The position numbers and the translations under genes are program-made. Below the pieces are notes generated by a model. The model saw only the letters and a list, made by a program, of their open reading frames with translations. It was not told the origin of the DNA and made no database searches. From positions 121,892,001 through 121,956,000 of the forward strand of contig NW_026262581.1 in the NCBI RefSeq assembly GCF_021869535.1: a stretch of 64,000 bases of DNA. The letters are read 5' to 3'. Below are positions 5,146-54,160 of this stretch, one piece after another. The DNA comes from Mytilus californianus. Taxonomy: Eukaryota. How positions within the stretch are numbered: the first letter of the stretch is position 1; every line of letters starts with the position of its first letter.

Positions 5146-7869
5146 TTTCTGATCACTCTGCAGGCCAGCCTGAAGTAAACGGTCGAAGGGCTTGTTCAGT
5201 ATAAATGGCAGACATCTTTTTTCTAACCTATTTTTTCTGTTGCTTGTTATTCTTTCTCATCCTGAGAAAACAGTTCGATCTGTATTTAATTCTTAGAACT
5301 CAATAAGTATTTAATAATCTAGGTTTCTTTGCATTTAGAAAGAGGACTTTTTCATGTTAAAGCGTGCCTTGATTTTAAAGTATTAATCCTATCTTCAATG
5401 ACACTTATGATTAGAGATCGTATGCCGTTATTTAGCCTTAGAGCCATAATGATTTTTCTCTGAAAATCAGATTACTATTGTTGACGCTGGAGACATTTTA
5501 TGTTATTCTTATATGTATATCAAAATAACTGGGTAATAAATTGGTCCAAGGAGTGAAAAATGGGAGGAAAGGTAGCAAAAGTGGTAGGAGTGACTGATGG
5601 AAAAAGGTTTAAATAAATATTCACTGTCAAATCATAAAATTCTTTTATTTATTGACACTGGGCTGTTGGTTTCTTATAAATCCAAATATTGTGATAAAAT
5701 TTACTTTTTGTTGAATATTCAGAGATTCGATGGATTTGTGGGATTTAAATGTATCTTTTCACAGACTTGATTACATGGAATAAAAACCATGAAGTAAATG
5801 TGTATAGTTGCTGTAATATGTGTAAATGGAACGTCAAAATTTCCTCAAACCATGAATGAAAGCCTTTTAAAAGCATTATTTGTGTATTGACTGAGAACTA
5901 ATAAAATTAGCCTGAATCTGCCTTGATTCATACTAAGAACCTTTTATCCAGAATAGATGTTTTTATTTTATTTTCAAAAATGGTTTGTCAAATGTATTTA
6001 TTTAAATAGTTAGGTAGCAAATCTGTCTTAAAAGGTATTGAACTGTTTTGTGAAGTTTATGTGTACCAAAGTATGAGAACTTCGCTGGTTATTTTTTTGT
6101 CAGCATTTGACGAATTATTAAGGTTTTCTTGTAACATTATTTAGAAGTATGGTGTAAGATAGAAAGTATGTGTATAGATGAACTATTGTTAATTTAATAT
6201 GTTATCATTGTCATTTTAATGAATATCAATATATATAATAAAAAGCCTTTGAATATAATGATTATGATTATTACATTGGCCACTTTGTTTGAAAAAGAAA
6301 AGAGAATGGAAACAGGGAATGTGTCAAAGAGACAACAACCCGACCAAAGAGCAGAAAAAAGCCCTAGGCCACCAATGGGTCTTTAGCAAGAAAATCCCAC
6401 ATCCAGATGTTGGCTTCAGCTGGCCCTAAACAAAAATGTATACTAGTTCACCAAAAAGGACGCTACACTTAACTCCAAATCATGCAATTGAAACAAAATT
6501 TTAAAAACACTTACATCAAACTTCAGTTCCATTTACAGGAAGTTTGGTAGCCATAAGTTATTACAGAAATGTTTTGGCTCATAATAATGATGAATTTCTT
6601 GTGCACTTAACATCCATTGAATGGAATTACTTTTCTACACATCCTGACATAACTCATAAATAAGGGATGGTTAATGACTATTACAAATAACAATGATCAA
6701 ACATGTCAGTCATCTGTGACACAGACGTACATATGTCCAAATATATAAACCAACCTGTTCAGGAGACCATCAAGCTTTGCATTTATGGATCTTATTTTTG
6801 CAAATGTTTACTATGTTTAAGTAGAGTTTTTGTAATTATTAATAAAGCAGAATATAGAAATATCACACCAACCTTTAAAAGTCAACTCTGAATGCAGAGA
6901 TTTGGAGATGATGTGTTTTGTAAGATAAATAATGGTTTGTAGTAGCTAAACTTTGAAATTAGCTTAAAGCAAAATAATTAAAGTTATGTCCCTTTGACCG
7001 TAGTAGTCATCTCTTATAGAAAGGTCTATTTTGAACTTTCCCTATTTGATTTTGCTTTTCTGTGTTCTTGTTGGTATTTTGTGACTAGCGAGGTTTCTTT
7101 CTCTATCTTATTTACTCCATACACAATGGGGTAAGATGGGGTTGATGTTAGTTTCTCGAGTTCATTATTTTGATATACCGGTAAACCAAATAAAGAGAAA
7201 AAGTTTAACTGTAACTTCCTTATAACTGTTTGATGTTATTTTGGATTCTTAAGGCCTTCATTCAGAAAAATGTTATTGTACTTTTTGCATTTAATAAGTT
7301 TAAGCTATATTTGTAATAAACAGCTTGTGGTTGTTGAAGCAGATTGTCCCGGCTGTTAACCCATGTTTGGGGAGCAAAATACTTACTTTTTGTTACATCG
7401 AACATAATACTTTAATCCTTCTAAGTCATCTTGCTTTGGTATTGACAACATACGTGATAGTTTGTGTATGAAATATAGGAGAAGCCTTTGGTGTCAATAA
7501 ACATGGTACCACTGTGTGTAGATTCCATTGGATAACTATTTTTATTTTTTTTATCTTTTTATATCTGAACTTGTGATGTGAATTTCCAAAAAGTATACTA
7601 ATACTCCCTTATTGAAGGTGGAAAATATATGTCTGTAACTTGTTTTGGAAATCTCTTGTATTTTCCAAAATACATCTAACTGAATTCGTTTAAGTTTAAA
7701 GACGTCAATTTTTTTGTGTTTTAATTAAAGCTTGTTTATCTTTTGAAGTTTCACTGGCAATCCCCAGTCCAATTAGAAACTATTGGAATGCAGCATACTT
7801 TTATCGTTGAAAATTAGTGCCACAATATGTTATTAAATACATGTATTGTTTTTGGCGCCTATTTTTTAT

Positions 7870-13879: not shown

Positions 13880-14470
13880 ATATTCCAACGGACAGTCTGT
13901 ATTCCGACGAGTACTTATTGTGCCACCTACTGACTGACTTGTTTGTATACTCCTTTATATATATATATGAGGCAGAATTCATACAGAACCTACTCAAAGA
14001 CAAAAAGAAAAAAACATTGCAAAGTTCTTTCATTTCACTTTCATATATTATTGATGTCTTGTCACTCAATAACCTACATTTCAGTGAGTGCTTGCATCTC
14101 CTAAATCCCATTGAACTTGATATTAAGGATACTACGGAAACTAGAAGGTCTGTTTCATATCTTGATCTTTTCCTCGATATTGACACGGATGGACGACTTC
14201 AAAATAGAACCTATGACAAACGTTATGGTTTCAATTAATAAATTACGTTCGTGAATGTTAAACTATACATACTTCATGAGCAGAGGTGTGCTTTTGACAC
14301 AAAAACTGCTCCAACAAAGTTATGAGGAAAAACGAACTAAATCGATAGTACTTAATGTTACGGTCACCATCACGACTTTGGATGACCGATACGATTTGTC
14401 TACGTCTCAACTCGATGACCAATACGATTTGGCTGTGTCTCAACTCACTAGCGACATGTTTTCGAGTCTT
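13880..14470 (+). pseudogene. Degenerate Penelope-like (PLE) reverse transcriptase fragment
   Basis: Decayed motifs: FQRTVCIPTSTYC (like QIVGIPMGTNCAP), LTDLFVYS..YEAEFIQ, SYIIDVLSLNN (like RYIDDVLS), ELDIKDTTE..SYLDL..YDKR, and RGVLLTQKLLQQSY. Frameshifts, stops, an internal deletion and a 33-bp tandem duplication at about 14381-14447. Confidence 0.8.
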
Positions 14471-15070
14471 ACATCGTTAGATACCAGATACTATTTTTTA
14501 TAACAGACCATACGGAATTTAAAAAAAAAAATCAGTTCCTGAAAGTTTTCAAATCGGTGCTAGTTGCCAAAAAACATAAAATCACATATTCAGAGCGTTT
14601 TATTTTAAACTAGTACCTTTATTTGAGAGATGTTAATCAGCTTGAAGCTAATACAGCAAGAAACAATATTGCAACTATGTTTTACAAAACACGACTCTGA
14701 AAAGTCCTGAGATCTCTTTCAAATTTTGGATGTATTTGTTTGTTGGTTTTTTTTCACGGACATGTGGCACTTTTTTTAAAGGTATTTTCACATTGCTGCA
14801 GCTCGTGGCTTTTTGAACAAATCTATGAGGTGTTAAATGAAATTGAAAAGCATTTTAAATACATGTTCAGCTCTTTTTAAGTGCAGAGCATCTCAAAAGT
14901 AAAGGTTGATTCAGTATAGTTTATTCTGATTTATATTTCCTATGTGTTTTTATTTGTTGTATAAGCGTATGACACCCAACGACACGTGTTCTAAAAGAAC
15001 GCGCGAGATCAAAAGTATGCCGACGGCATCTATTAATCATACAAGTAACAGTAATCTAATTTAACCATGT

Positions 15071-15999
15071 TTACACAGTATCAGGTTCTTCGTTCCATTG
15101 CCGTACATTGTCTTCAGTCTTTGGACTGTTAATACTGCTGTTAAAAATTTTAGGCACATGCTTTGTTTCTGGTTTTTCAGAGTTTTCAGTGTTTGTCGGA
15201 TCCCACGTTATTGTAAATTCTGATTGTGCATCTTCTTCTCCCAAGTCACTGTCAGTGCCATAGTATGATTCCGTCATAGAATCATCGTCGTGTAGTGAAA
15301 GGAGAGAATTACACACAGAGTACGACTCCGGAGAGAGTGTGAATGAAAATTTGATACCCCGAATATAGTCCTCACCTTCCGTTTCACAGTTTTGAAATGC
15401 ATCTGAATAATATTCACTCTGCTTCATAACAGCTTCGTTTAAAGCAATGTAAAATTTCATTGGTGTTTTGATTTGCAATTCAAGAAGTAATAAATCGTCA
15501 TCCATTGTAGAAGCAAGTGCTGTTTCCTCCTCAATAATGTCATAACATTGTAGGTAACTGGAATATTCAGAGGAAAAGAGCGGGACTTCTCCTATCACAT
15601 GCCGAATGTTCACTGGTAAATGAGATCGATCGTCTAAGACGTCTTTAATTTGAAATAATCCATCATTCGTTACCGATTTGTTAACTTTGTAAAATTTTCC
15701 ATTTTGTGAAATTGGTAAATACATTTCTTTGTCTTTTTCGTCTGTGCAAACCAAATATTTGGAAGGCGGGGATCTTCTCGTTAAAGATCCAGCAACATCA
15801 GTTCGTTTTATTTGCAGAATTTCACCAGAAGAGATTTGTTTTCTTTCTGTCTGTTTTTCTCCTTGTTCGCTGTCTGTTAAACACAAACAACTGATACTGT
15901 TTGCTACCAAAACTTGGTCTGTATCCTTTTCTGCTACTGACTCTAGTGTGGTACCAGGTAAGTACTTTTCTGTAGGATTATTCAATAAAGTAAACCAAC
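15071..15999 (-). CDS. CABIT-domain protein A (GAREM/THEMIS-like), coding exon 2 (terminal)
   Basis: Acceptor tttccatttAG at 16001-16000. Phase-1 join gives YSG|WFTLL. Contains KYLVCTDEKDKEMYLPISQNGKFY and LPVNIR, matching the CABIT core Cys motif. Acidic Ser/Tyr-rich tail; stop TAA at 15073-15071. Confidence 0.85.
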
Positions 16000-17060
16000 C
16001 TAAATGGAAAAAAATGAGCATCAATTGTGAGATGGATATAGACATATAGAATAAATGATAACATAGGAAATAAGATATGACATGGGTCCAAGCACTAAAC
16101 ATTATACATTGTATTTTTGGTTCCTCTTTTAGTTGAATACAATACAGTGTTTTATAGAATTTTCTTTGTGTCCGCAATAGTGTATGTGTTGACTGAAAGG
16201 GGTGGCAATAGAGTAGGGGTAGACTGAAAAGGGGGGGGGGGGGGGGGGGGTACTACTGTAAGTCAAAAAACTTGTTTATAGTCTAATAGTCTAAAAGTGA
16301 GTCAGTTTTAACATTCATTTTCATTTTATATTTTCAATAATATTTATTAACCAAATTGCATCCCTTGTCCCCCGCTCCTACGCCAGTTGTCTGGTCACCT
16401 GTATTTTGATTTATGATTCTCTGTTCGTCTTTTCGTCCTTTTTCTTCGTACGAGGTGAGATTGTCTGCATCTTTTCACCATATGTGTTTCACTCATGTGA
16501 ATTTTGGAAAACTGTGCAAGTCAGGTTTCCTAACTATGAGGACATTAAGTATACGCACAGGACCTTCTATAGAAACCGTCACGACTGGGAAAAGCTATAA
16601 AAAATTCCAGTTGGTGTATTCACAATACATAAAATAAGACAACAGGAATCCAATAATACAACAGGCCACATCAGTCAACCACCATGACTCCTCCAAAATA
16701 AACGTACAAACAAAGACCAACAACAAAAAACAACGCATAATTCAGATGGCCTGACTTGGTACACTACAGGCATAAATGTTATGTAGAGGGGTTAACTTGT
16801 TTTACGTGTGCACGAACCTTCCCGTTGACGTCGTAGAACCTGAACACACAATAAATAAAAACAGTATAATACAGCTGCCAAGAGGATGACCATTAACTTG
16901 AATAAGGCAATAAAGAATTAAGTAAACAAAAATACACATTTTCTAGACAATTTCACAACGCTATCTCCTGATCAGCCGCAGCCCCACAAACCAAAGGATA
17001 AGGAAACAATACAATAACGCCGCAATGATACAGACATCTGTTATTATAGGTTTTACTTAC

Positions 17061-17412
17061 CACTATAGTCCTGTGGTATGACAACATGTCTGCCAGTCTG
17101 CTGGAGTTCTCCTTTCTCGGAGTCTAGTCTCATGACCGCAGCTTTCACCTTCTTTGCTGATCTGTGGCTGTGAAGCAGCAAAGGCTGAGATAGGTCAAAG
17201 TGTAAAAGATTCCAATCTAGACTACAGGACTCAACACTACACCTGACAGCACAAGGAAGTCTAAAGTTATTTGTTATATGATTCAAAGTATAAGAATGTG
17301 TACTCCATTTGAAGTCTAACGTTTTATTGGATGTTTGTAACCTACGCTTGCCTCCTTTGAATTTTCTGGTTTTTATCACTCTTTCGGCACCGTAATGATC
17401 ATCTTCTTCCAT
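17061..17412 (-). CDS. CABIT-domain protein A, coding exon 1
   Basis: ATG at 17412. FKWSTHSYTLNHITNNFRLPCAVR...VVIPQDYSG resembles the GAREM N-terminus (WS..L..L...YRLPQI; IEIPVHYAG). Donor G|GTAAGT at 17060. Joined CDS is 1281 nt, 426 aa. Confidence 0.85.
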
Positions 17413-18689
17413 TTTTTCAATGAATTTATTGATAATGTGTTTACTTAGTTATAATTCCGGTCACACAGTAGATATATACACACTCATAAACCTACACATC
17501 TTTAATGTCGCCATATTTAAATGTTTTCTAAAGAAAAATGTTTTTAAATATGACGGATGAGTAAATTTCAATAAAAACGAATTAGAATTAAGATAATATC
17601 AACATTTTTACCTATCTCTTAAAGAATACAAAATATATTCTATTGAATAACTTCTTAGGTATGATATCCTGCAGCTGTTTACATAAAGCTGCATAAATGA
17701 AAAGTTGTATACAAATTTTGCTGTTGTCTGTTCTGTGGTCGGGTTGTTGTCTCTTTGACACATTCCACATTTCCATTCTCAATTTTAAACTTCACATGTT
17801 TCTTAGTAATAAACTATAAGAATGCACGTTTTTCTTTAAGGTCTACTTGAAGAAACCGACCTGTGCGATTTGTGTGTTAAGACTGTATATATCATTGAAA
17901 TATTTCTTTAAACCTAACAATTTTGTGTTGCAGATAAAAAAAAAGGTTTGTTTATAATTAAATTGTCATACACGTCAACATAGGTGTCTAAGCTAGCTCT
18001 GACAGCCCTGTCAATCGGACAGAAAACGTCACTACTGTACAAATTGTAACACCTGACTGAGATGTTTCTTTACATGTTTAATGACTTGAAACAACAAGAA
18101 AGGATTCGTATGCGGCTTGAATTTCTTAATGTATGACTATAATGGCTAGATGTTGATGTGATATGGTTTAAATTCCATCATACGAAACGGTTTATGTCGA
18201 ATTAGGCTATTTATCACCGTAAATTGTATTCAAATGTCACATATATGGAAAATACGGATATTTTGCAACCCGCAATGACCTGTAAGTTGGGTCATTCATT
18301 TGAAAAAGATAGTTCCAAGACCAGAATGCATTTCTTTATACAATATTGATAAAGATAATACAAAGCTCAACAAAATGCAGAAAAAATCTTTGAAGCCAGT
18401 CGACGTACTGTTACTTTTAAAAACAGGTGTAGAATATCTAGAGAAAAAGTTCAGCAAACAAACTAACAGAAAATGTAACTGTGCGCTGGTGGTAGACTTC
18501 AAGTCCCCGTGGGTACTATTTGAGCGATGGTCACATTATTATACAGTCTTTTATATACAACACTGATATAAAGTTTATATAAGACACTGTTGGATATTTG
18601 GGGTCTTAGAATCTCCTAATAGCAAAAAATTTGAACAGAATCAAACTCAATCTGGTGTCCTCATTTGTAGCTTAGGGCAGAGAGGGCAG

Positions 18690-18832
18690 TGCCTAAAAAC
18701 TATGCTAGGTTCGGTGTGAGCCAAGGCTCCGTGTTGAAGACCGTACTGTGACCTATAATGGTTTACTTTTATAAATTTTGACTTGGATGGAGAGTTGTCT
18801 CATTGGCACTCATACCACATCTTCTTATATCT
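18690..18832 (+). mobile_element. SINE-like repeat ending GTCTCATTGGCA(C/A)TCATACCACATCTTCTT
   Basis: The same 3' end recurs at 24150-24302 (-), 35850-36072 (+), about 54240-54300 (-, partial) and about 63775-63810. Confidence 0.6.
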
Positions 18833-19753
18833 ATATAGGTTGTAGTATACTGATAAATATTTTTTAGTAAAACATCAGCTGGTTATAATTATTGAAGGTA
18901 AATTTATATCACCTTCTGTAGGGTGATTGTCAAAAAAAGGATAAGTTGCACAAAAAGTAACTTGTATACAAATTATATATATTTTATATACCACTCCTAT
19001 ATGACTTTTCCTGCACATCTTCGTCATATCCTAACCTAAATACTATAATAAGTATTCGCAAAGCAAAGGGTGGTAAACCTGGCATTTTTGTGGACCGTAT
19101 TATTTTTTACAAAAGTTTACAAAAAGGTCAAACTGGAGAAAGTCTTTCAAACTCATGTTGTCCAATATTTACCAAGTATAAATATTTTAACGCATGAAGG
19201 ACGTTTGAAGTGCCTTATAAATCAAATTTCCTACAAGATTGTAATTAGTACATTTGAGTAATATAACTGGGATTATCAGGTTCAATGATCAAGTACAATC
19301 AAAAATGAACTTTTCTTTTTTTTACAAATTTTAATGAAGTCTGATGATTTATGAATGATAAAATTCAGATTCGTCAAATGTCCTAATTAAAGGTAGTATA
19401 AATTCTGGGCGATTTTGAATCAATTTTAGAGTTTCAAAAGTAAGGGTGAGAAACCAGTTTATCTATGAAGTGTTATGTCAATAAAAAATCTGATGGACAA
19501 GTTCTTGTTCGTTTGTGTATTAATGAATGGGATTTAAAAATAATTACTGAACCAAAATAACTGCCACAATGGGATAGTACACACAAGACTGAATCAGTGC
19601 GTTTCAATACACGGAAAACAAATAATTTACACTTCACTAACATATGTGAAGAGATTTGTCCACTGTCCGGAAACATTTTGTTTAAAAAAGAAAGTGATCG
19701 CATGTTTTCTATGACAATACATAAATATAATGTTATGACGAACTTCTTCTAAA

Positions 19754-20090
19754 ATGTCGGGATCTGTAAGGAAGAAGACTCGCTTACGCCAAGCTGTGGC
19801 TAGACAAGAAAGTATTCGTGAGGAGCCTAAGAAAGCACAATGGAGCAACCAGGAGTATACAACAGAAGAGATATTAAAACAGTTCAGTCTACCTCAGATT
19901 GTGAAATGTAACCAGGATTCTGTGAGGATTACATCTGACTCTCCACTGCCTATAAACTTTGGCAACCCACTGGTTTTTTATGACAAAAGAACCATTCGGA
20001 AACTGCTGGCCAAAAATATCGGTATTGATGCAGTGTCAAACAAATACATTGAGAGTAATGAAACTATTGTTATACCTGCTGATTATGAAG
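19754..20090 (+). CDS. CABIT-domain protein B (GAREM/THEMIS-like), coding exon 1
   Basis: ATG at 19754 in aaaATGT context. AQWSNQEYTTEEILKQFSLPQIVKC...IVIPADYEG. Donor G|GTATGG at 20091 (phase 1). Confidence 0.87.
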
Positions 20091-20398
20091 GTATGGTGTT
20101 TCTTTATAAAATATATTGTATCATATTTTCTTCCGGTATTGTAGAAAAACATTGATATACAATAAATGTATTAAAATAAATTATATTACAATCTGAATAG
20201 ACATTATACTTGTTATGTAAAAAATAAAAGATAGGAAGTCCAAATAATACAATATTTAACATTTGATTTGAAAAGTAATTTAATTTTCCATCCCTCTCTT
20301 GATATAAGTGTTTTCTTGTTCAACTGTTTAAATGAAACCAAGATATGCTTTGATGATATATTTCTTTCCACATATCTTCAAATTCAAGAATTTTTCAG

Positions 20399-21192
20399 GT
20401 TTATTTCTAAGATTGCAGTCAAGAACATGCAAAGATAATACATGCTTCAGGAGTATTGAAGCAATGGCTAAAAATAATGTGCGAGCTTTCCTAAACATGA
20501 CAAAATTTACAGCCTTCCGCATTGGTGAAAATGTTGCCACAAACGATTATACCAAAGTAGATTACACTCCTGGCAGCGTGTTCATCGTCGACAGTGTTTG
20601 TACTGGAACTACCAGGTCAAGAAAGGATATTGTTCAACATAGTTATCTAAAATGTAAGGACGAAAAGGATGTTCAGATTTTAATTCCCTTCCATCATCCT
20701 GGGGAATTTTCCGAGGTATTGACGAACAATAACAGAATGTCTGTCAACAGTAAATATCTTATTGAAAATCAAAAGTTTCCTATGGTAGTGCGCTTCATCA
20801 GTAGTAAACAAAAGCCTAGACTGAAATCTTTTTCTGGATTATTCACTCTCATAGACTCGTTTGAAGAATCAACTGTAATAGGATGTGTTTTAAACCCATC
20901 AGGATTTACAATGTTTGAACTGCCTGTATCTTCACCGTTGTCATTCCATTTAGCATTAAATAATCAGGATATGAACCAGCATCCTGTTGTCAAAAACGCA
21001 CTGAAACTTTGCGAGGCCAAACATAAACTATATGCAAAAGACATGAAGTACAAGTTTAAATTCTCCCATAGAATTGTTCAGCTTTCTGGAAAGAAATATT
21101 CAACAGTATCAGAAGATGGTGAAGATGACGGTCCAAAAAGTTCTCTAGATAGCGCGAGGTTCGATGTTGCTACAACTTATCTGTATATTTGA
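20399..21192 (+). CDS. CABIT-domain protein B, coding exon 2 (terminal)
   Basis: Acceptor tttttcAG at 20397-20398. The join gives YEG|LFLRL. Contains SYLKCKDEKDVQILIPFHHPGEF and FPMVVRF; ends ATTYLYI-stop. Joined CDS is 1131 nt, 376 aa. Confidence 0.87.
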
Positions 21193-22959
21193 TGAATGGA
21201 CATACCGAAATTCATTTTACTGGATTGTAATTCAAATGAAAATTACTAGTAAATCAAAGGCACACTTTGAAAAGGATTTAAAATATGTTTACATCTACCG
21301 ATTTCACAAATTCTATCTTTAGTTATCTTTATGATGATTTTGCGTCATGGATTAATATACATAACTTCTTTTCCGTGTATGAAGTTTCGTGATATGTCAA
21401 TGTTATGTTCCTGGAAATTATAAATTCATGACTGAATTGTAGCTCCATGTTAGTTTGTGGTGGATATATTGTTTACTTTAAATCGTCATTTATTGAATAA
21501 AAGTTCAATGTACCACCATTGACGTTTTGTTCTGCATATGTCATTGCATTGGTCTTCCTGAACAGTTTATTTCATCTACTAGTTTTTTCCCCTAGATTGG
21601 CAATGTATATTGATAGATATTGTATCGTGCGTCAGATTGACGACAAGGGATTACGCTTCTGTGTTTTCTTTTTTAAATTATTAATATGATAGCATTAGTT
21701 TTTCACTCAATTACATATTGACACCCACACTATCAAATAAATAACATAAAGTTGCGGTATTTCCACATGTTGTAAGTCAAAATATGCATTCGTACGGTTA
21801 TGCAGACCAGTGATGTATACTTTTAAAAGGGGAGCAAACGGTTTGAGCTATAAACATATTCATAGATTAAGAGAAATTTAATTTTTACTTGAATTCTATT
21901 AAACTGTTGATATACTTCGTATTGTAACGTTTTTATATGTTACATCAGTGGGTTTTATTATCATTGTATAAGATTACTTATTCTCATTTACCGTTATAAA
22001 GTAATTCATTACAATCTATTTTTATCGCCTTCAATGAGAGGTTAAATGTCAAATTAATCATGTTAATCTGGTGCCCCGTTGCTCTGTTTATACAGGTGCA
22101 GTCCGGTTGACCTCAGCTCCTGGCTCCGGTTGACCTCTGCTCCGGGCTCCGGGCTCCTGTTGTCCCAGCTCCGGTTGATTATTTCTTTGTAAGGAGTCAT
22201 TTAACCATATTTGTAATCGGGCTACTGAGGGCAAATAAAGTGGTATAAAAGAGAGAAATAGCTGTAAAGAGGGAGTTACGATTTTGTGTATACGAGAGAG
22301 GTGTACGTAGGAGATTTCGGAGTATGCCACCGTATTGTTGAGCCTGCAGTTTAGATGTTGTAAATTTTATCACTGTTACTTTGGATTTTGAATAATACAG
22401 TATTGAACTTTTAATCGACTTTGTATTTATGTTCACTTACAAGACTTCGTTCAGACTACCAGGATCTATTTATTTTATTTATGTGACCAGGCTTCCCTAT
22501 ATCACGCTACCAGTTGAATTAGGGTAATCCTGTAAAAGTGTATCATTGGCATCTGTCGTCCGTGTACGAGTGAAAGGTACGACCCGAAACTTATACACCC
22601 AACAACACAGCACAAACACCAACACACGGATACGCACTTTAGTTTAACACTTTACTTAACTTTTCGTCACAGTATATCATAAAATCCGCGTGCATTGTTC
22701 TGCGATCTTGTTATATCCTTTTTCATATATAGTTTGTTCTGTTCTAAAGAAACACTTAATTCACAATATTTTAACTACGAAACACTTAATTCACACTATT
22801 ATAACTACGAAACACTTTTTTTTATTCTTAAATAAATAATTTTATTATTTGTGCACTATACGTATAAGAAGTTCCGCACAAAGGGTCGGTTTTGACTCTA
22901 ATCATAATTTGGCGTCCCTCGTCCATTTATCTTACACATGTTCATCATCTCCCTTGAAT

Positions 22960-26499: not shown

Positions 26500-28028
26500 T
26501 CATAGATATTTAAGAAGGTTTTGGATTTCCTTTTCCCTCGATTGAGGTGCATACATCGTGTCATAAACCGTGATTGTCTTTCCATTGCTGTTTGATACAC
26601 ATAGTTTACTCTGATCTACTGAGAAACATATAGCAAACGGTCCATTTATAGCATCCTCTTTTGACAAAGGTACATCCAAACTGATGCCGTCTGAAGATAA
26701 ACGATGAATATTATTGGATCGATGGCCAGCGACATAAATGTTGCCACGAGTGTCTGTAACAATATTTCTAGGACTAGCTAAGTTTGATACATCTTGACAA
26801 AACACATGGCGCCCATCCGGTTTCATGCAATAAACATAAGTACAATCCGAATAATAAAAATCCCCATTTTCTCTGGGATGTATATAAAATACACTCATGC
26901 TAGGTACAGTTATTTCACTTAATTTAATACCGTCGGTATCCAATATTTGCAAGCTGTTCTTCCCACCAACAATAATTTTCTTGCCAATTGCTGCGATTCC
27001 ATAAACTCGCCAATTGAATTTGACCATTTTACCTGCTACCATACTGTTGGTGTTGATAAACTGAATTGCATACAAGATTGGCAAAGTTGCAACAGCTTTT
27101 CCTTCTCTTTCGCGGGTGATTGCTACGTCCCAAGGTTCACCAGTCAGTTTACAATCTTGCAAGTATTTTCCCTCTAGAGTGCAGATGATTATATTGCATT
27201 TACCGCCACCACACAACAGCAAACGATTGTCGTCTGTAGCTGCTATACCAGTTATCATAACATCTTGCTTTACGTTTACATCAAATTTATAACTAAAATC
27301 AAATCCTTGTATGAAAGACTCCCTCTGTTCTACTTCTTTGATATGTTTTTCATCCATGTTGAACGATGTTTTGGTATCTGATGATAATGATATAGACCCA
27401 AATGAACCAAGACTATCTAAGATGTCTCCGTTTTCTTGAAATACTAATGATATCGTGCCAGTTCGAGATTTCATATGTAGAATTCTTTCTTCAATACCTG
27501 TAATGTGTTCTTTTATAATATGGGCAGCTAGAAAGGTGTGTCTGTCTGAACCATGCTGTTTTTCAAATTCTATTTGTTCTTTATGAGACTTCACTAAGTC
27601 TTCGGTTTGTTGAAGTTTTCTTGATTCTCTTTCTAGCTTGGATTTTCCGGATTGTTTTAGGTTTGTCAGTTTGTCATACAATTCTTTTTCAATTACGTTC
27701 ATGCGTTCTGTTACCTTTTGTCTAAGTCTAGATACCGTATTCCGAATAGCTATATCCTGGTCTTCTACTTGTTTTATATTTTGCAGCTTCTTCTGCCGTA
27801 TTCCATCTAGCGACTTGTGTATATTTTCTAGCTGTGACAGAAGATCGCTGATACTTCTTGATTCTTTGGCACCCTTAGCAGCAATATCTATTGGAATAAT
27901 GTTTGCACATGCACGGTGATTATGGGTCATACAGTTTTGACAACATATAGCGTCGTGGAACAAGCAGTGATATTCAAGTCTCTGATTGGTATGTTTTTTG
28001 CAGAACTGGCTTGATGATTTCATCAAAG
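26500..28028 (-). CDS. RING-less TRIM-like protein, terminal exon: B-box2, coiled coil, NHL-type beta-propeller
   Basis: Acceptor tctttttcAG at 28030-28029. B-box CKKH..LEYHCLFHDAICCQNCMTHNHRAC, a long heptad region, and NHL-like blades GEPWDVAIT, SPRNIVTDTRGNIYVAG and GPFAICFS. Stop at 26500. Confidence 0.9.
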
Positions 28029-29102
28029 CTGAAAAAGAATGCAATAAAAAATAAGATGTACACATTTGTATATGACACGACAAACTTACCATAAGCGTAA
28101 AGAAATAAAGTCATGATGAAAAAATCGTACTTCAAATAATTATAATTGAACTCAGCATATTTCAAATATTTACTGTCATAAAAAACCTGTTTTTAGTTCT
28201 TATTTATGCTAACAGTTTAAGGAAAGAATAATAAAAAAAGTAACTCGCTAAACTTACTGTATCAAGCCATTTTTATATTGGAACCGAGTCTATACCCGTC
28301 TACCTTGTGAAATATTTCTATCAATATTGTTTTGTTGTATATTGTATGTAAATTTTTAAGGACTGGACTTTAAGTTAATGCGACATTTTAATTTTTTGAA
28401 GTTCAATACAATGGAATTTAAGAGGATTTGGTTTTATGTTAATTGGAGCTCTGCCAGTATTCAAAATTAAGTTTAAATACTTTTTAAATTCATATACAAT
28501 CGTATACTTTTGTTTGCAATTGACATTTTTTGTAATACTTTGCTCGTGTGAAATAATTTTTAGTTCTTTGCTCTTATCTACATCTCGGTTTGAAAATTTC
28601 ATCTTTTTTACACGTAGGACTTTTTAGAAAAATGTAAAAACAAAATTCAAACAAATACCCCCTCAGCCCAAAGAAGATAATAAAACAGAACTGTGAAAAA
28701 TGTCTTTAGTACGGTAAAAGATTCTTTATACTTTTAGTACATATAATTATATGTAACATCTATAGGGTGGCAATGGTAACATTTTTAAGCCAGATGCATG
28801 GAAAGGGCCATTCAGAATCATTACTGAAATCCAGGATAGGATAAGACAACGACAATTGAAAAAATCAATACAAATATCGAAAACAAAAACCATTAAAAGC
28901 TCACACCTATGACACCATAAGCTGAAGCGAAGAAAACACAAATTATATGTTTGTTTGTATATTGTAGAGGACCTTTTGAACATGTGTGAGACGTGCATAG
29001 CAATATGAATAAACTGGGTGCGACCGTTGTCTATTGCGCTTACACTTTTCTTTATTGTATGACAGGAAATAGTTTGTTATGAGAAGTATAAATGGCTCTT
29101 AC

Positions 29103-46883: not shown

Positions 46884-49073
46884 GAGACAAGACAAGACAA
46901 GACAATTTTATTCTTTAAAACCATTGTATACACATTGGTACAAAGAATGAAATAATAATACATAGTATACAAAATAAATTGTGCACATGACAAGATATGA
47001 ATGTTACAATTACTATACAAGATCATTTAGTTATTATAATAGAAAAACAGATAGACAAAGGCTAACCAGGAAGACCTGCTAATGAATTTATAACCTTTAT
47101 AAATTTACATATATTTTTTAACTTATTTCTATGTGTTGTTTGTAATAATTTACAAAATTTAATTACATTTACTCTGTTACAATAACAATTATCCAAAAAC
47201 AGTTTTCTTGAGTCGTCTAGGGATCTACAATTCAGAAGAAAGTGAAATTCGTCACCTAATTCTTGACATTGACATAAATTACAATATCTCCTTTCTCTAT
47301 CTAAACCTATCCATCTACCAGTTTCAATTGGTAATCTATGATTACCAGTTCTAAATCTACAAAATATAACCCTATCTCTATCTGGTAATATATCTAAATA
47401 TTTTTCGAATTCAAACTTATCCTTATATAATCTGTACGATAAACCTTTTGACGAATTACATATATCTGAACGCCAGTTTTGTTGAAATTGGTCAAATAAC
47501 TTCTGTTTTAAACTATTATTTAGCCATTTTGTGTTAAAGCCAGTTTGTGCTAACCAGATATTACTATAGCCACATGTTTCAAGAATATTTTTTATAAAAA
47601 TAACCCATTCAGACGTACAATTATTCTGTGAATATTTAAAAAACATAAAGTTATACAAAATGTGTGACAACTTATTTTCTTTGCCGTGAACAATTCTACA
47701 CCAATAATTTACCATACGCAGTTTAATGTAGACTGCCATGGGATAGACACCAAGTTCGCCATAAACCATAAAGTTTGGGGTCGACTTCTTCAAGTTCAGT
47801 AGTAGCTTGCAAAATTTCAAATGTACTCTCTCTATAATATCTATATTACTGAACCCCCAAATTTCACACCCATAAAGTAAAATAGGCTTCACTATCTTAT
47901 CGAACAAATCATACTGACATCTCATAGAAAGGTTATGAACTCTCCCCTTTTTAAGTACATCGTACATAGCTCGATATGCCTTAGTAACTAATATCTTTTT
48001 AGTACTTGCAAAGCTACCTGTCCTCGAAAAAGTCAATCCCAAATATGGAATTTCTTTGACAACTTCTAATTCAATATTATTAAAATAAAAATGAGGATTT
48101 TGCGATAAACGTCCACTAGAAAAAATCATAATTTTCGTTTTACTAGAATTTACACTAAGTTTCCAAAGTTTACAATATTCACTAAATGTATTGAGTTGAG
48201 ACTGAAGAGATTCAACTGATTCAGCAAATAGAACAGTATCGTCTGCATATAATAAAGCAAAAAGCTTAATATAAATATTCATCTCATTCTCAATTTCTTC
48301 AGATATACAGCTTAGTCCCAAAACATCATGCATTTGTAAAAAAGATTCCAAATCATTCAGATATAGGGAGAATAAAAAAGGAGAGAGATTTTCTCCTTGT
48401 CTTACACCAATATTACAAGGAAAATAGTCAGATGATTGACCATTATATACAATTCTTGATTTAATACCACTATACATATTGAATATTACGTTATAAATTT
48501 TACCATTAATTTCGTGTCCAAGCAATTTCTGATACAATCCATTTCTCCATACACTATCAAAGGCTTTAGCGAAGTCAATAAAAGCACAATACATTTTTTT
48601 CTTTTTACTTTTCATTAAGCTAAATAACATGTAAATAACAAATAAATTATCTGTAGTACTATATCCATTTCTAAATCCTGACTGATTTTCACAAATTATC
48701 TGATAATCATCAGAAAAATTGTTTAATCTTGTATTCAAAACAGAGGTAAATAATTTACCAAAGCAACTAATAATAGTGATAGGCCTAAAGTTTTTGGGAT
48801 CCAATTTGTCACCCTTGTTTTTATATAATGGTATAATATTTCCCAATAACCAAATCTCGGGAATAATGCCACTGTCAAATATAATATTAAACAGCTTTAC
48901 TAATATACTAGATAGAATATGAAATGAATGCTTCAAATACTCATTTATAATAACATCGTCACCAGAGGCTTTATTATTTTTCAGATTTTTAACTGCTTTT
49001 TCAATTTCATCTACATTTATGGGTACATTCAATGACATATTTAATCTACCAATGTCGTTTTGGTTGTTTACGT
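46884..49073 (-). mobile_element. Young 5'-truncated non-LTR retrotransposon, probably RTEX clade
   Basis: AATAAA plus (TTGTC)4 tail at 46884-46911. Candidate 6-bp TSD TTACAA at 46878-46883 and 49074-49079. The RT ORF is uninterrupted. Confidence 0.9.
47062..49073 (-). CDS. ORF2 remnant: reverse transcriptase plus C-terminal Cys/His domain, no endonuclease
   Basis: NKASGDD, NFRPITIISCFGKLF, FIDFAKAFDSV, GVRQGENLSPFLFSLYLNDL, LLYADD, YLGL, and HRLPIETGRW..R.C..C..GDEFHFLLNC. The first ~12 codons of the tracked ORF come from flanking DNA. Confidence 0.85.
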
Positions 49074-50853
49074 TTACAAAGGATAACAAAATCATATAGA
49101 TTTTTTGCAATCAACTATTTATTGACAATTGAAAATGATGCCTTTGGGGAGTTATTTAACAGTATCATGTGTTTTGATCATATCTGAATGTCACAATGGT
49201 ACTAAAGACTTGTTATAAATGTCAGAATTGTCCAAACACTAGTAATGATTGTGATGTTGAAATATAAAGGTAAGGTGTCAGTTTTGTTGCATATAAATAT
49301 GACATGTAAAATGATGTTTCTTATTCTAGACTCTTACTAGCCTATAGTATCATATCATAGTTATCTTTTTAAAAAAGTCAAGTACAAATGCATCAAATAA
49401 AAATGAAGTAGCATGAATCTTATATATAAAATTTTAAAAATCTCCAATATATGTTTGATCGTCAATATCTGTAAACATATCAACTACTGTGTTTTAACTT
49501 TTATCCTAGAATAACTTTATCACTGGTTCTCCAAGTTTGCCCTTATTAGAGCTCCTACATGTATAATCAGTGATTTTGATATGACATTCATTACTTCCTT
49601 ATATTTTGTACATATATAAACTTTGACATGTTTGATAAACATTTTTTAAAGTTCTGTTTGATAAGTGCAAAATCAGGAAGGAAAATATTTTGAAGTATTT
49701 CCAACATGTGACATTGACCAGCTAGTAGTACATGGCCTGCTTTGATCTTTCTCTATTGTAGTAAGCTTGAACTTTCCTCTCTGTATCTGCCATTGTAACT
49801 TGTAGTCATTTTATGCTGTAATAGACACAGCTTCAGTTATATTCATGCCTCAAGACCTGGACCATTATATCATTAATGGTTTTCCAGTTTTCAACAGTTT
49901 TATAACATCAATAATCCCTTTCAAAGATAACTGGTAAAATCAGCATAGCAAATAAAAGTTTTATAATGCTGTTAAATGATATAAATGATGTCTAGTCAAG
50001 TATGATGATGTTGTACAATCAATCTGGCTTCAGTGACAGGGTTAATTAGAAGGAAGAAACATTTCTGATTACAACTTGCATCTGATAGCTTCTCTTTGAT
50101 GTGGAATTGATCATTTGTTCTGCAGTGAAAAATGTAAGGTTCTATTAATGAAGAAATTGTGATGTAAAGCTCAACTTGTTGAACTTTTTTGTTTGTTCAG
50201 AAATAAAAAAAACTAATAAATTATGCATATTTGAAGACATTTTGTTTTATACTTTTGCTTGTATCTAATTGCTTTTATGTTAAATGAGTTGTCCTTCATT
50301 AGTAGGCCACTCTGACCTTAATTTCATGCTTAAATTATAAAGTTTTATTAAGCATTATTAGCACTCACGATGGCCAGATAATTATGACGTTCTTATTAGT
50401 TTTTTTTCACCATTTGTCATTTTCTCAAAAATCTTATCCATGGCCTCTGTACGAGTATAGAGATGAAAAGTATAGATTGTAAGTTTTCTTCTGTCTGAGT
50501 TTATGAATATTCAGTTGATTTTATGAACAGTTTGTTGTTTTATGATCAGTAGCAGATTGAGCTTAGTTTTGGTACTGGGGTACTATAGAATGGAAAATGT
50601 TTTTCCCTGTAAATTAAATAATTTAAGATAACATCATGATAGTATCTCCTTCTTTATAAAGATCAGTAAATGAGTTGAGACAAAAAAAAAAAAAAAAAGA
50701 AATATGGGTCCCAATTTGGCCCTAAAAAATGTGAATTAAATTAAACTCTGCAAAAAAGTCATATTTACTGTACACTGAGTAGATCTATTACATAGATATC
50801 ACATGTAAGTTTCAACTTTTATTTACCAGTAGAAAATGCCATGAAAATGAATG

Positions 50854-53800
50854 TTTCCCCTCCACCTTTCAGCTCTCCTTGCAGGTATGGAGCTTATGTT
50901 GATATATAATTGTCTGATATGTAGTTTCTGACCATACCCCTCCTAGTTTCTGATTGTGCCCCTTCGCCTTCAGCTGTCCTTGCAGGTTTGGAGCTTATAT
51001 TGATATATAATTGTCTGAAAGGTAGTTTCTAATGGTGCCCCTCCACCTTCAGCTGTCCTTGCAGGTATGGAGCTTATATTGTTATATAATTGTCTGATAG
51101 GTAGTTTCTGATGGTGCCCCTCTACCTTCAGCTGTCCTTGCAGGTATGGAGCTTATGTTGATATTTAATTGTCTGATATGTAGTTTCTGATCATGCCCCT
51201 CCTAGCTTCTGATTGTGCCCCTCCACCTTCAGCTGTCCTTGCAGGTATGGAGCTTATATTGATATATAATTGTCTGAAAGGTAGTTTCTGATCATGCCCC
51301 TCCACCTTCAGCTGTCCTTGCAGGTTTGGAGCTTATATTGATATATAATTGTCTGAAAGGTAGTTTCTGATCATGCCCCTCCACCTTCAGCTTTCCTTGC
51401 AGGTATGGAGCTTATATTGATATATAATTGTCTGAAAGGTAGTTTCTGATTGTGCCCCTCCACCTTCAGCTTTCCTTGCAGGTATGGAGCGTATATTGAT
51501 ATATAATTGTCTAATAGGTAGTTTCTGATCGTGCGCCTCCACCTTCAGCTGTCCTTGTAGGTATGGAGCTTATATTGATATATAATTGTCTGAAAGGTAG
51601 TTTCTGATCGTGCCCCTCCACCTTCAGCTCTCCTTGCAGGTATGGAGCTTATATTGATATATAATTGTCTGATAGGTAGTTTCTGATCATGCCTCTCCAC
51701 CTTCAGCTATCCTTGCAGGTATGTAGATTATATTGATATATAATTGTCTAATATGTAGTTTCTGATCATGCCCCTCCACCTTCAGCTGTCCTTGCAGGTA
51801 TGGAGCTTATATTGATATATAATTGTTTGATAGGTAGTTTCTGAAGGTTTCCCTCCACCTTCAGCAGTCCTTGCAGGTATGGAGCTTATACATGTATTGA
51901 TATATAATTGTCTGATAGGTAGTTTCTGATCAAGCCCCTCCACCATTAGCTGTCTTTGCAGGTAGGGAGCTTATATTGATATATAATTATCTGATAGGTA
52001 GTTTCTGATCGTGCCCTTTCTCCTTCAGATGTCCTGTCAGGTATGGAGCTTATATTGATATATAATTGTCTGATAGGTAGTTTCTGAAGGTTTCCCTCCA
52101 CCTTCAGCTGTCCTTGCAGGTATGGGGCTTATATTGATAAATAATTGTCTGAAAGGTAGTTTCTAATCTTGCCCCTCCACCTTCAGCTGTCCTTGCAGGT
52201 ATGGAGCTTATATTGATATATAATTGTCTGATTGGTAGTTTCTGATGGTGTCCCTCCACCTACAGCTTTCCCTGCAGGTATGGAGCTTATATTGATATAT
52301 AATTGTCTGATAGGTAGTTTCTGATGGTGCCCCTCCACCTTCAGCTGTCCTTGCAGGTATTGAGCTTATATTGATATATAATTGTCTGAAAGGTAGTTTC
52401 TGATCGTGCCCCTCAACCTTCAGCTGTCCTTGCAGGTATGGAGCTTATATTGATATATAATTGTCTGATAGGTAGTTTCTGATCATGCCTCTCCACCTTC
52501 AGCTGTCTTTGCAGGTATGGAGCTTCTATTGATATATAATTGTCTAATAGGTAGTTTCTGATCGTGCCCTCTACCTTCAGCTGTCCTTGCAGGTATGGAG
52601 CTTATATTAATACTGTAAATTCAGAAATTATTGCGTGCATTTATTATTGCGATTTTGTCATTTTAGACTAGAATGTGATTTCAATTTTTATGATATTGAT
52701 AAAAATCTTGTTTAATTCATATAAAAAAATTCGAAAATGAGAGTTTAAATTATTGCGATTATAACCCTGTCGCATTTGTAGCAATAATAAAAACATCGCA
52801 ATAATTTCTGAATTTACAGTATATAATTGTCTGATAAGTAATTTCTGATCGTGCCCCTACACCTTTAGCTGTCCTTGCAGGTATGGAGCTTATATTGATA
52901 TATAATTGTCTGGTAGGTAGTTTCTGATCAAGCCCCTCCACCATTAGCTGTCCTTTCAGGTATGGAGCTTATAGTGATATATAATTGTCTGATAGGTAGT
53001 TTCTGAAGGTGCCTCTCCACCTTCAGCTGTCCTTGTAGGTATGGAGCTTATATTGATATATAATTGTCTGATATGTAGTTTCTGATCATGCACCTCCTAG
53101 CTTCTGATTGTGCCCCTCCACCTTCAGCTGTCCTTGCAGGTATGGAGCTTATATTGATATGTAATTGTCTGATAGGTAGTTTCTGATTGTGCCCCTCCAC
53201 CTTCAGCTGTCCTTGCAGGTTTGGAGCTTATATTGATATATAATTGTCTGATAGGTAGTTTCTGATTGTGCCCCTCCACCTTCAGCTGTCTTTGCAGGTA
53301 TGGAACTTATGTTGATATATAATTGTCTAATAGGTAGTTTCTGATGGTGCCCCTCCACCTTCAACTGTCCTTGCAGGTATGGAGCTTATATTGATATATA
53401 ATTGTCTGATTGGTAGTTTCTGATTGTGCCCCTCCACCTTCAGCTGTCCTTGTAGGTATGGAGCTTATATTGATATATAATTGTCTGATTGGTAGTTTCT
53501 GATCGTGCCCTTCCACCTTCAGCTGTCCTTGTAGGTATGGAGCTTATATTGATATATAATTGTCTGATATGTAGTTTCTGATCATGCCCCTCCTAGCTTC
53601 TGATTGTGCCCCTCCACCTTCAGCTGTCCTTGCAGGTATGGAGCTTATATTGATATGTAATTGTCTGATAGGTAGTTTCTGATTGTGCCCCTCCACCTTC
53701 AGCTGTCTTTGCAGGTATGGAGCTTATATTGATATGTAATTGTCTGATAGGTAGTTTCTGATGGTGCCCCTCCACCTTCAGCTGTCCTTGTAGGTATGGA

Positions 53801-54160
53801 GCTTATATTGATATATAATTGTCTGATTGGTAGTTTCTGATCGTGCCTCTCCACCTTCAGCTATCCTTGTAGGTATGGAGCTTATATTGATATATAATTG
53901 TCTGATAGGTAGTTTCTGATTGTGCCCCTCCACCTTCAGCTATCCTTGTAGGTATGGAGCTTATATTGAAATATAATTGTCTGATAGGTAGTTTCTGATC
54001 GTGCCTCTCCACCTTCAGCTATCCTTGTAGGTATAGAGCTTATATTGATATATAATTGTCTGATAGGTAGTTTCTGATCGTGCCTCTCCACCTTCAGCTA
54101 TCCTTGTAGGTATGGAGCTTATATTGATATATAATTGTCTGATAGATAGTTTCTGATTGT
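50854..54160. repeat. 79-bp minisatellite, ~38-39 copies
   Basis: Unit GTGCCCCTCCACCTTCAGCTGTCCTTGCAGGTATGGAGCTTATATTGATATATAATTGTCTGATAGGTAGTTTCTGATC, e.g. at 51481 and 51560. Occasional ~100-bp variants carry a 21-bp insert. Confidence 0.97.
52613..52819. mobile_element. 207-bp TA-flanked MITE (Tc1/mariner-type TSD) inserted in the 79-bp array
   Basis: TIR CTGTAAATTCAGAAATTATTGCG / CGCAATAATTTCTGAATTTACAG. TA is duplicated relative to the empty units. Confidence 0.9.

Follow-up and report, generated by a model that had tools for sequence, protein, structure and literature searches.

Introduction

To our knowledge, CABIT domains are known almost only from the vertebrate proteins THEMIS and GAREM, and there is still debate over what they do biochemically. 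The CABIT2 domain of THEMIS has been described as an all-beta core with an inserted SH3-like part (bioRxiv 10.1101/2024.10.01.616165), and solved THEMIS structures are available as 9i3p, 9iaz and 9uou. Here we describe two neighbouring genes, called A and B, that lie in a 64,000-nucleotide (nt) stretch of the genome of the mussel Mytilus californianus (NCBI RefSeq assembly GCF_021869535.1, contig NW_026262581.1, positions 121,892,001 to 121,956,000 of the forward strand; this whole stretch is called the window below, and coordinates given without a locus or contig name refer to it). A first-pass annotation of the window had suggested that positions 15,071 to 21,192 hold a head-to-head pair of strongly diverged single-CABIT genes that arose by an old inverted duplication, and that their products might act together like a split THEMIS or might form a lineage-specific adaptor family. 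The analysis below indicates that A and B are, with high probability, functional and anciently separated paralogues of the CABIT adaptor family, each belonging to a mollusc-wide orthogroup of its own, and that they stand head to head in pteriomorph bivalves, on either side of a spacer that appears constrained in Mytilus.

Structure and Transcription of the Two Genes

Gene A lies on the minus strand and gene B on the plus strand, each has two coding exons (Table 1), and they encode proteins of 426 and 376 amino acids (aa), respectively. The exon lengths (117 + 1 + 308 residues for A and 112 + 1 + 263 for B) add up to exactly the lengths of the orthologues P0001 of M. edulis (426 aa) and P0009 of M. 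coruscus (376 aa); the starts of the first exons of A and B agree with those of these two proteins, and the second exons are 92% (A) and 97% (B) identical to them. The two start codons are 2341 bases apart. The first exon of gene A ends at the donor site ...GACTATAGTG/GTAAGT at 17061 (a slash marks the exon boundary) and its second exon opens with the acceptor ...TTTAG/GT at 15999; in gene B the corresponding sites are G/GTATGG at 20090 and TTTCAG/GT at 20399. Both introns are in phase 1 and interrupt a GGT glycine codon that immediately follows DY[S/E]. A run of about 22 C residues (minus strand) lies in the gene A intron at about 16231-16252.

The analysis of RNA reads covered positions 15300-21250 (5951 bases), and 20 sequencing runs from 12 studies contain part of this stretch. 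The gene A junction (15999/17061) is crossed by 13 raw RNA reads with 10 different start points in the stranded raw-read run X21 and by spliced contigs in the three contig runs X1, X6 and X11 (X11 being an RNA-seq library), and the gene B junction (20090/20399) is crossed by two raw RNA reads and by spliced contigs in the same three contig runs. In run X21 the first mate lies on the plus strand for all gene A reads and on the minus strand for all gene B reads, and the two RNAs therefore run in opposite directions. Upstream of gene A the contigs reach 17521 (X1), 17571 (X11) and 17702 (X6), and the gene B contigs start at 19521 (X1), 19569 (X11) and 19346 (X6). Contig depths for A and B are 34.8 and 19.8, 32.9 and 16.4, and 34.4 and 18.1 in the three contig runs, a ratio of about 2:1. 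The open reading frames, the splice sites, the RNA that crosses both predicted junctions and the opposite read strands thus bear out the arrangement proposed in the first-pass annotation, namely two divergent two-exon genes that flank a 2.34-kb spacer. The amino acid motifs that it had listed as common to both proteins are all present as well, except that three of its spacings were off by one residue (the true ones are WS...Y, Y....I and DEKD.....P).

The two proteins are only 25-26% identical to one another (BLASTP E = 1e-13 for exon 1 and 5e-16 for exon 2), and a tblastn search with the four exon peptides found no further CABIT gene in the window. Comparison with M. trossulus, with the counts taken per exon and then summed, gave dS (synonymous divergence) and dN (nonsynonymous divergence) values of 0.34 and 0.041 for gene A and of 0.28 and 0.040 for gene B; the resulting dN/dS ratios of 0.12 and 0.14, respectively, show that both genes are under purifying selection.

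Domain Content and Predicted Structure

When searched singly, each of the four exons matches the Pfam CABIT family (PF12736, whose gathering score is 24 bits): exon 2 of A with E = 6.4e-8 (32.8 bits), exon 2 of B with E = 7.1e-7 (29.4 bits), exon 1 of A with E = 7e-5 (22.8 bits) and exon 1 of B with E = 1e-3 (19 bits). For the full-length orthologues the scores are 70.2 bits (P0001) and 59.9 bits (P0009), and CABIT is the sole domain in each, while no SAM domain was seen at E ≤ 1 in the A and B orthologues or at E ≤ 10 in the window exons. The HMMER search that had been proposed as a check thus gave CABIT matches for every exon and for both orthologues, and the earlier description of both products as single-CABIT proteins without SAM is in accord with the Pfam scans of exons and orthologues alike.

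The relationship to THEMIS can also be seen in profile searches. A profile (A3) built from B-type and related proteins, when compared with the sequences of solved structures, had THEMIS as its sole match (E = 1.5e-5), in four collinear pieces that cover CABIT1 and CABIT2; a narrow profile of A and B found THEMIS among the Protein Data Bank (PDB) sequences only at E values of 0.2-0.35. In the A3 alignment the IP.DY.G.F motif lies opposite LPMNFPGLF of CABIT1 and IPTSYKGKF of CABIT2, and the Cys...LP....G.F block falls around THEMIS residues C152 and C413. The cysteine of the YL.C.DEKD motif (C202 in A and C198 in B) is invariant in the A orthologues, in the pteriomorph B orthologues and in the A-clade alignment, and it is kept in at least 90% of the rows of the wider alignment A3. 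In gapless HMMER alignments it stands three residues after THEMIS C152 and C413; the molluscan cysteine is plausibly the equivalent of these two residues, and a difference in loop length would account for the offset.

The structure predicted for the B orthologue has a mean predicted local distance difference test score (pLDDT) of 80.5 and a predicted template modelling score (pTM) of 0.75, and it is nearly all beta except for a helix at residues 308-325. It displays an all-beta core with an inserted SH3-like head, the SH3-like matches spanning residues 122-226, and the conserved cysteine sits on a strand inside this SH3-like part. Gene B encodes an essentially bare CABIT domain, and its conserved C-terminal T-x-Y-x-Y-[ILV] packs onto the fold in the model. 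All B-type proteins end in PSA...R...Y/F-x-Y-[ILVM], and the terminal TTYLYI of the B orthologue forms a confident strand (residues 368-375) in the model, so we take the C-terminus of B to be part of the fold rather than a free tyrosine motif.

Gene A, on the other hand, encodes one CABIT domain followed by an acidic disordered tail of about 100 residues. Tail length varies between about 100 and about 800 residues across the A orthogroup (P0001-P0033), and despite this the tails share motifs. An E-F...W pattern, within D/E-A-x-SEF-x-[IF]-x-W just after the domain, is invariant in 15 of 15 A-clade sequences from mussels to Octopus; 13 of the 15 proteins end in valine, 10 of these 13 with an acidic residue at position -2; and the pteriomorph A proteins have PK[IV]FNSSI and WNE.PD[TV]V in common in addition. 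The C-terminal [D/E]-x-V looks like a PDZ-type ligand, and the tail motifs of A, this putative ligand included, are possibly short linear motifs. Neither PxxP nor YxN occurs in the four exon translations of A and B; since neither protein has a SAM domain either, both are without the elements for Grb2 and SHP binding by which THEMIS and GAREM are defined.

Orthogroups and the Age of the Duplication

A search of 1.84 billion representative proteins with the A+B profile gave 476 clusters at E ≤ 1e-3, 311 of them at E ≤ 1e-10. In the best 150 clusters there is one CABIT match each, at or near the N-terminus in nearly all full-length members. Phylogenetic trees of these proteins place A and B in separate orthogroups, and both orthogroups mirror the species tree. 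Orthogroup A (15 rows; Shimodaira-Hasegawa-like approximate likelihood ratio test (SH-aLRT) support of 97) contains pteriomorphs, Solemya, Potamilus, Patella, Haliotis, Bulinus, Lymnaea and Octopus, and orthogroup B (20 rows, SH-aLRT 100) contains pteriomorphs, Mactra, Potamilus, Haliotis, caenogastropods and heterobranchs. A third, orthogroup C (SH-aLRT 99), consists of long proteins of 640-1350 aa from cephalopods, gastropods and bivalves, among them a 1346-aa Mytilus protein, and the trees also give two further molluscan clades, B2 and D, as well as chelicerate, annelid and brachiopod clades. The molluscan CABIT orthogroups number at least five, A and B among them. Among the long relatives that were checked, a weak SAM match is found only in the Lingula protein P0084, which lies in a separate branch of the tree, and the GAREM-like architecture therefore falls outside the A/B/C group. 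No B-type protein turned up in cephalopods, though A- and C-type proteins occur there.

The distribution of each orthogroup across the molluscs places the A/B duplication before the split of bivalves and gastropods, and the same follows from the approximately unbiased (AU) test, which, with the full sample, rejects a pteriomorph-only A+B clade (log-likelihood difference of 211, p = 3.9e-5). The same test on a first, poorer sample that held only pteriomorph B sequences had given p = 0.10 for such a clade. The relationships among the orthogroups are less sharply defined: the grouping of B with C has a support of 86, and a tree in which A and B are held as sister orthogroups gives p = 0.25.

The intron that A and B share is likewise old. 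A phase-1 intron in the glycine of DYxG is present in the A-type genes of Crassostrea, M. trossulus, Haliotis, Octopus and Solemya, in the B-type genes of Crassostrea, Pinctada, Mizuhopecten and M. trossulus, and also in a B2-type gene of Mactra, and many gene-model fragments in the list of representative proteins start or stop exactly at this site. This intron is ancestral within the family. The first-pass annotation was right that both genes have a phase-1 intron in the same glycine and that they are old paralogues, the latter now documented by their separate orthogroups with bivalve and gastropod members; the intron cannot, however, serve as proof of one inverted duplication that gave A and B, since it is found throughout the family. 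The suggestion of a lineage-specific family does not survive, given the two mollusc-wide orthogroups and the outcome of the AU test.

Conservation of the Pair and of Its Spacer

The A and B orthologues are also head to head in M. trossulus (with a spacer of 2.6 kb), Crassostrea virginica (2.9 kb), Pinctada imbricata (about 3 kb) and Mizuhopecten yessoensis (9.3 kb). The flanking genes that could be seen are not the same from species to species: in the oyster one encodes an inositol phosphatase, and in Mytilus one is of the B-box kind. Since A and B are paralogous, their adjacency, which Pteriomorphia have retained and other lineages have lost or widened, is most simply explained as what is left of an old local (inverted) duplication; the alternative is a secondary juxtaposition in the pteriomorph stem.

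Comparison with M. trossulus by blastn showed that three segments, 17414-17711, 17787-18413 and 19087-19738, align at 88-90% identity, the last of which extends into the 5' untranslated region (UTR) of gene B. In the same comparison identity is 72-80% in the gene B intron and 67-74% in the 3' UTRs and flanks, no alignment was obtained for the gene A intron, and 19-28% of synonymous sites differ. Both 5' UTRs, together with about 0.9 kb of the spacer outside the transcripts, therefore evolve more slowly than the seemingly neutral sequence around them, a pattern that points to cis-regulatory sequence used in common and suggests that the spacer is a constrained regulatory region serving both genes. 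Positions 18414-19086 have no counterpart in M. trossulus. Two fragments of dispersed repeats lie in the spacer (Table 1); both have RNA depths in the hundreds in raw reads and summed contig depths of 20,000-110,000, with loose ends on either side. An Rfam scan of 14000-22500 gave no match.

These comparisons gave two further observations on CABIT genes. The Pinctada imbricata A copy (locus L003, 6058-7756) looks frame-broken: the annotated product of 319 aa starts only within the SH3-like part, a piece upstream of it (6944-7300) is in a different frame, and the usual WNE.PD.V end is shortened to ...SWN; this copy is either a pseudogene or an assembly error. In Mactra antiquata (CM103817.1, at 48.68 Mb; locus L008) a B2-type gene (395 aa) and a D-type gene (440 aa) lie tail to tail 9 kb apart with an RA-domain gene between them, and the B-type gene is 33 Mb off on the same chromosome (locus L011). 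Local clustering of CABIT genes in bivalves takes more than one form.

Weighing of the Explanations

A number of observations weigh against our conclusion that A and B are functional CABIT paralogues that have stayed head to head in pteriomorphs. On the side of the domain, the window exons were searched one at a time, with P0001 and P0009 as proxies for the full-length proteins. The model of the A orthologue is mediocre (pLDDT 60.9), with residues 36-324 structured and a disordered tail at 325-426 (pLDDT below 50). A Foldseek search of the PDB (to 2026-04-08) with both models returned nothing at E ≤ 1e-3, and VIA-align against 48,161 representative chains matched the SH3-like part alone; a whole-domain match was absent from these two fold libraries, which are apparently both without the THEMIS entries. 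On the side of the pair, no partner gene was found within 10 kb in Haliotis, Octopus, Solemya, Potamilus, Patella or Mactra (the intervening gene in Haliotis is TauD and the gene upstream in Mactra is MIF), and in Potamilus A and B are on different scaffolds. Conserved synteny, which the first-pass annotation had named as a check, was thus confirmed for four pteriomorph lineages and was not seen within 10 kb in six other molluscs, and adjacency is therefore not essential for either gene. In the raw-read run, moreover, A is far more abundant than B (depth of about 2-10 against about 0-1.6), and co-expression of the two genes is at best putative. Classic bidirectional promoters have transcript ends under 1 kb apart, and those of A and B are beyond this, at about 1.6 kb as measured between contig ends. 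Finally, searches of the literature for CABIT together with Crassostrea or Mytilus found no relevant paper on, or functional account of, a mollusc CABIT protein. The pair had been put forward as an undescribed system, and this holds in so far as no paper on the proteins was found, but in UniProt and NCBI the orthologues already carry the name of CABIT domain-containing proteins.

The distance between the transcript ends, together with the two repeat insertions and the unalignable block of about 0.7 kb that lie between them, would also fit a view in which the adjacency is left over from an old inverted tandem duplication and each gene has a separate promoter, so that the two are uncoupled neighbours. 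The 9.3-kb spacer of the scallop, the variation of the A:B ratio among runs, and the fact that the pair is broken in other molluscs with neither gene lost point the same way. Nonetheless, the orientation has been kept in mussels, oysters, pearl oysters and scallops though the visible flanking genes differ, and the Mytilus spacer is more conserved than introns, UTRs and synonymous sites, which makes such independence somewhat unlikely in our estimation. In a further view, a bidirectional promoter could drive A and B together, and their products could pair into a heterodimer that takes the place of CABIT1-CABIT2, the two chains making up one adaptor unit. The divergent pair has persisted in about four pteriomorph orders, its spacer is constrained, both transcripts are seen at a similar ratio in all three contig runs, and the CABIT domains of THEMIS pack together and jointly bind Grb2 (PMC13381594), all of which speaks for such a unit. 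Neither protein, however, has PxxP, proline-rich sequence or YxN; the genes were not found within 10 kb of each other in Potamilus, Mactra, Haliotis, Patella, Solemya and Octopus; cephalopods, which have A- and C-type proteins, showed no B-type protein; A far exceeds B in the raw-read run; and the tree favours, by a small margin, a grouping of B with the long C orthogroup over one with A. This is mild evidence against the heterodimer, and we regard a split THEMIS of this kind as improbable.

The remaining two explanations concern the origin and the reality of the genes. A young, bivalve-specific inverted duplication followed by fast divergence, with the shared intron as the mark of that event, would be in line with the restriction of the observed pair to Pteriomorphia and with the p value of 0.10 for an A+B clade in the poorer AU sample. 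Once the B orthologues of Mactra, Potamilus and gastropods are added, however, the constraint costs the 211 log-likelihood units given above, both orthogroups mirror the species tree, and the intron is present in gastropods, a cephalopod and heterodont bivalves, in genes of the A, B and B2 types; the wider B sampling, the trees and the AU test together reject a young A+B clade, and we give a recent origin very little credence. That A and B might be pseudogenes or mis-modelled open reading frames that yield no protein is harder still to believe: nothing in the window suggests it, and the Pinctada A copy alone looks frame-broken, while the Mytilus genes have intact frames, canonical splice sites that are used, dN/dS ratios of 0.12-0.14 and orthologues of equal length in other Mytilus species.

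Possible Functions

If A and B are genuine CABIT paralogues, as we conclude, then by homology only they would be cytosolic scaffolds for protein-protein interaction that, like THEMIS and GAREM, probably serve phosphotyrosine, phosphatase or adaptor signalling, and a non-enzymatic interaction scaffold is, by this analogy, the most likely function of both. Since they have no proline-rich, YxN or SAM elements, other contacts would serve; those of gene A may be made by its tail motifs and possibly, through the C-terminal valine, with a PDZ partner. In a more elaborate form of the heterodimer idea, A and B would be a co-regulated two-chain equivalent of the THEMIS tandem-CABIT unit in which the tail of A (SEF..W and [D/E]-x-V) would anchor the complex to a membrane-proximal scaffold. 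We think this improbable; if it were true, it would represent an invertebrate split THEMIS-type hub without Grb2-binding proline motifs or SAM.

Molluscs have at least five old single-CABIT orthogroups, in which A and B are minimal proteins of the CABIT-only or CABIT-plus-short-tail kind, and such small CABIT proteins, B especially, could serve as models of what a lone CABIT domain does. The conserved tail motifs of A provide concrete binding hypotheses. The result itself is at the level of annotation, as automatic pipelines already recognise CABIT in the orthologues.

Features of the Locus and Its Surroundings

The features of the two genes and of the sequence between them are collected in Table 1.

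Table 1. Features of genes A and B and of the intervening spacer, in window coordinates.
Feature	Position	Strand	Remarks
Gene A coding exon 2 + stop	15071..15999	-	SH3-like head, remaining CABIT core, disordered acidic tail; stop codon 15071-15073
Gene A C-terminal EPDTV	15074-15088	-	exon 2
Gene A tail motif SEF..W	about 15203-15223	-	exon 2
Gene A conserved Cys codon	15746-15748	-	within SH3-like head
Gene A intron	16000..17060	-	phase 1, GT..AG, 1061 nt
Gene A coding exon 1	17061..17412	-	117 codons + first base of split Gly; N-terminal CABIT core; start codon 17412
Gene A exon 1 motifs	17061..17412	-	WS...Y....I...F.LP..V and IP.DY.G
Gene A 5' UTR	17413..17702	-	limit reached by transcript contigs; 90% identical to M. 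trossulus
Untranscribed spacer	17703..19345		~1.64 kb, zero unique transcript depth outside repeats; candidate shared regulatory region; blocks 17787-18413 and 19087-19738 (the second reaching into the gene B 5' UTR) 88-89% identical to M. trossulus
Dispersed-repeat fragment 1	17720..17787		insertion relative to M. trossulus (alignment gap 17712-17786)
Dispersed-repeat fragment 2	18709..18834		in part of spacer that does not align with M. trossulus
Gene B 5' UTR	19346..19753	+	limit reached by transcript contigs
Gene B coding exon 1	19754..20090	+	112 codons + first base of split Gly; start codon 19754
Gene B intron	20091..20398	+	phase 1, GT..AG, 308 nt
Gene B coding exon 2 + stop	20399..21192	+	SH3-like head (about 20425-20739), remaining CABIT core; stop codon 21190-21192
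Gene B conserved Cys codon	20653-20655	+	within SH3-like head
Gene B C-terminal TTYLYI	21172-21189	+	folds back as beta-strand in orthologue model

Three other parts of the window drew attention. A 530-aa open reading frame on the minus strand at 26500-28092 has weak matches to a B-box zinc finger (E = 1e-3) and to beta-propeller repeats and is TRIM/NHL-like; in M. trossulus a B-box gene (567 aa, minus strand) lies just downstream of gene B (locus L004, 13106-16449). At 47062-49110 a 682-aa open reading frame on the minus strand matches RVT_1 (E = 4e-38) and is a retroelement copy. The region 51500-54100 gave repeated weak tblastn matches to the basic N-terminus of A (29 aa, E values of 0.001-0.08) at a spacing of about 80-340 nt, and it has a strong AT skew (-0.17 to -0.26); it is probably a tandem or low-complexity repeat rather than a CABIT relative.

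Comparison with Known Systems

The closest entries in the databases are the CABIT domain-containing proteins of M. edulis, M. coruscus and M. trossulus, together with Crassostrea virginica LOC111118896 and Mizuhopecten yessoensis LOC110457546 and LOC110457548, all of which are A or B orthologues or near-identical alleles. These labels are automatic, and we found no publication, function, orthogroup or mention of a conserved pair attached to them. With THEMIS and THEMIS2, A and B share the domain family and, as predicted, the core with its SH3-like head, but each of their chains has one CABIT where THEMIS has two in tandem, and they do not have the proline-rich sequence, bound by the C-terminal SH3 domain of Grb2 (SH3C), that follows CABIT2 in THEMIS. 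In overall layout they resemble GAREM1 and GAREM2 (FAM59A and FAM59B), the vertebrate Grb2-associated ERK regulators, which have a single N-terminal CABIT followed by a disordered tail and which are, as A and B are predicted to be, cytosolic proteins in which neither a signal peptide nor an enzymatic domain is detected. The molluscan proteins differ from GAREM in being 376-426 aa long rather than about 875 aa and in lacking the C-terminal SAM, the proline-rich region and the YxN sites for the Grb2 SH2 domain. As a pair of genes, A and B resemble conserved bidirectional pairs in their divergent transcription, in the deep conservation of their orientation and in their constrained intergenic region, and they differ from the usual members of that class in that their transcript ends are about 1.6 kb apart instead of less than 1 kb and in that the two partners are paralogous.

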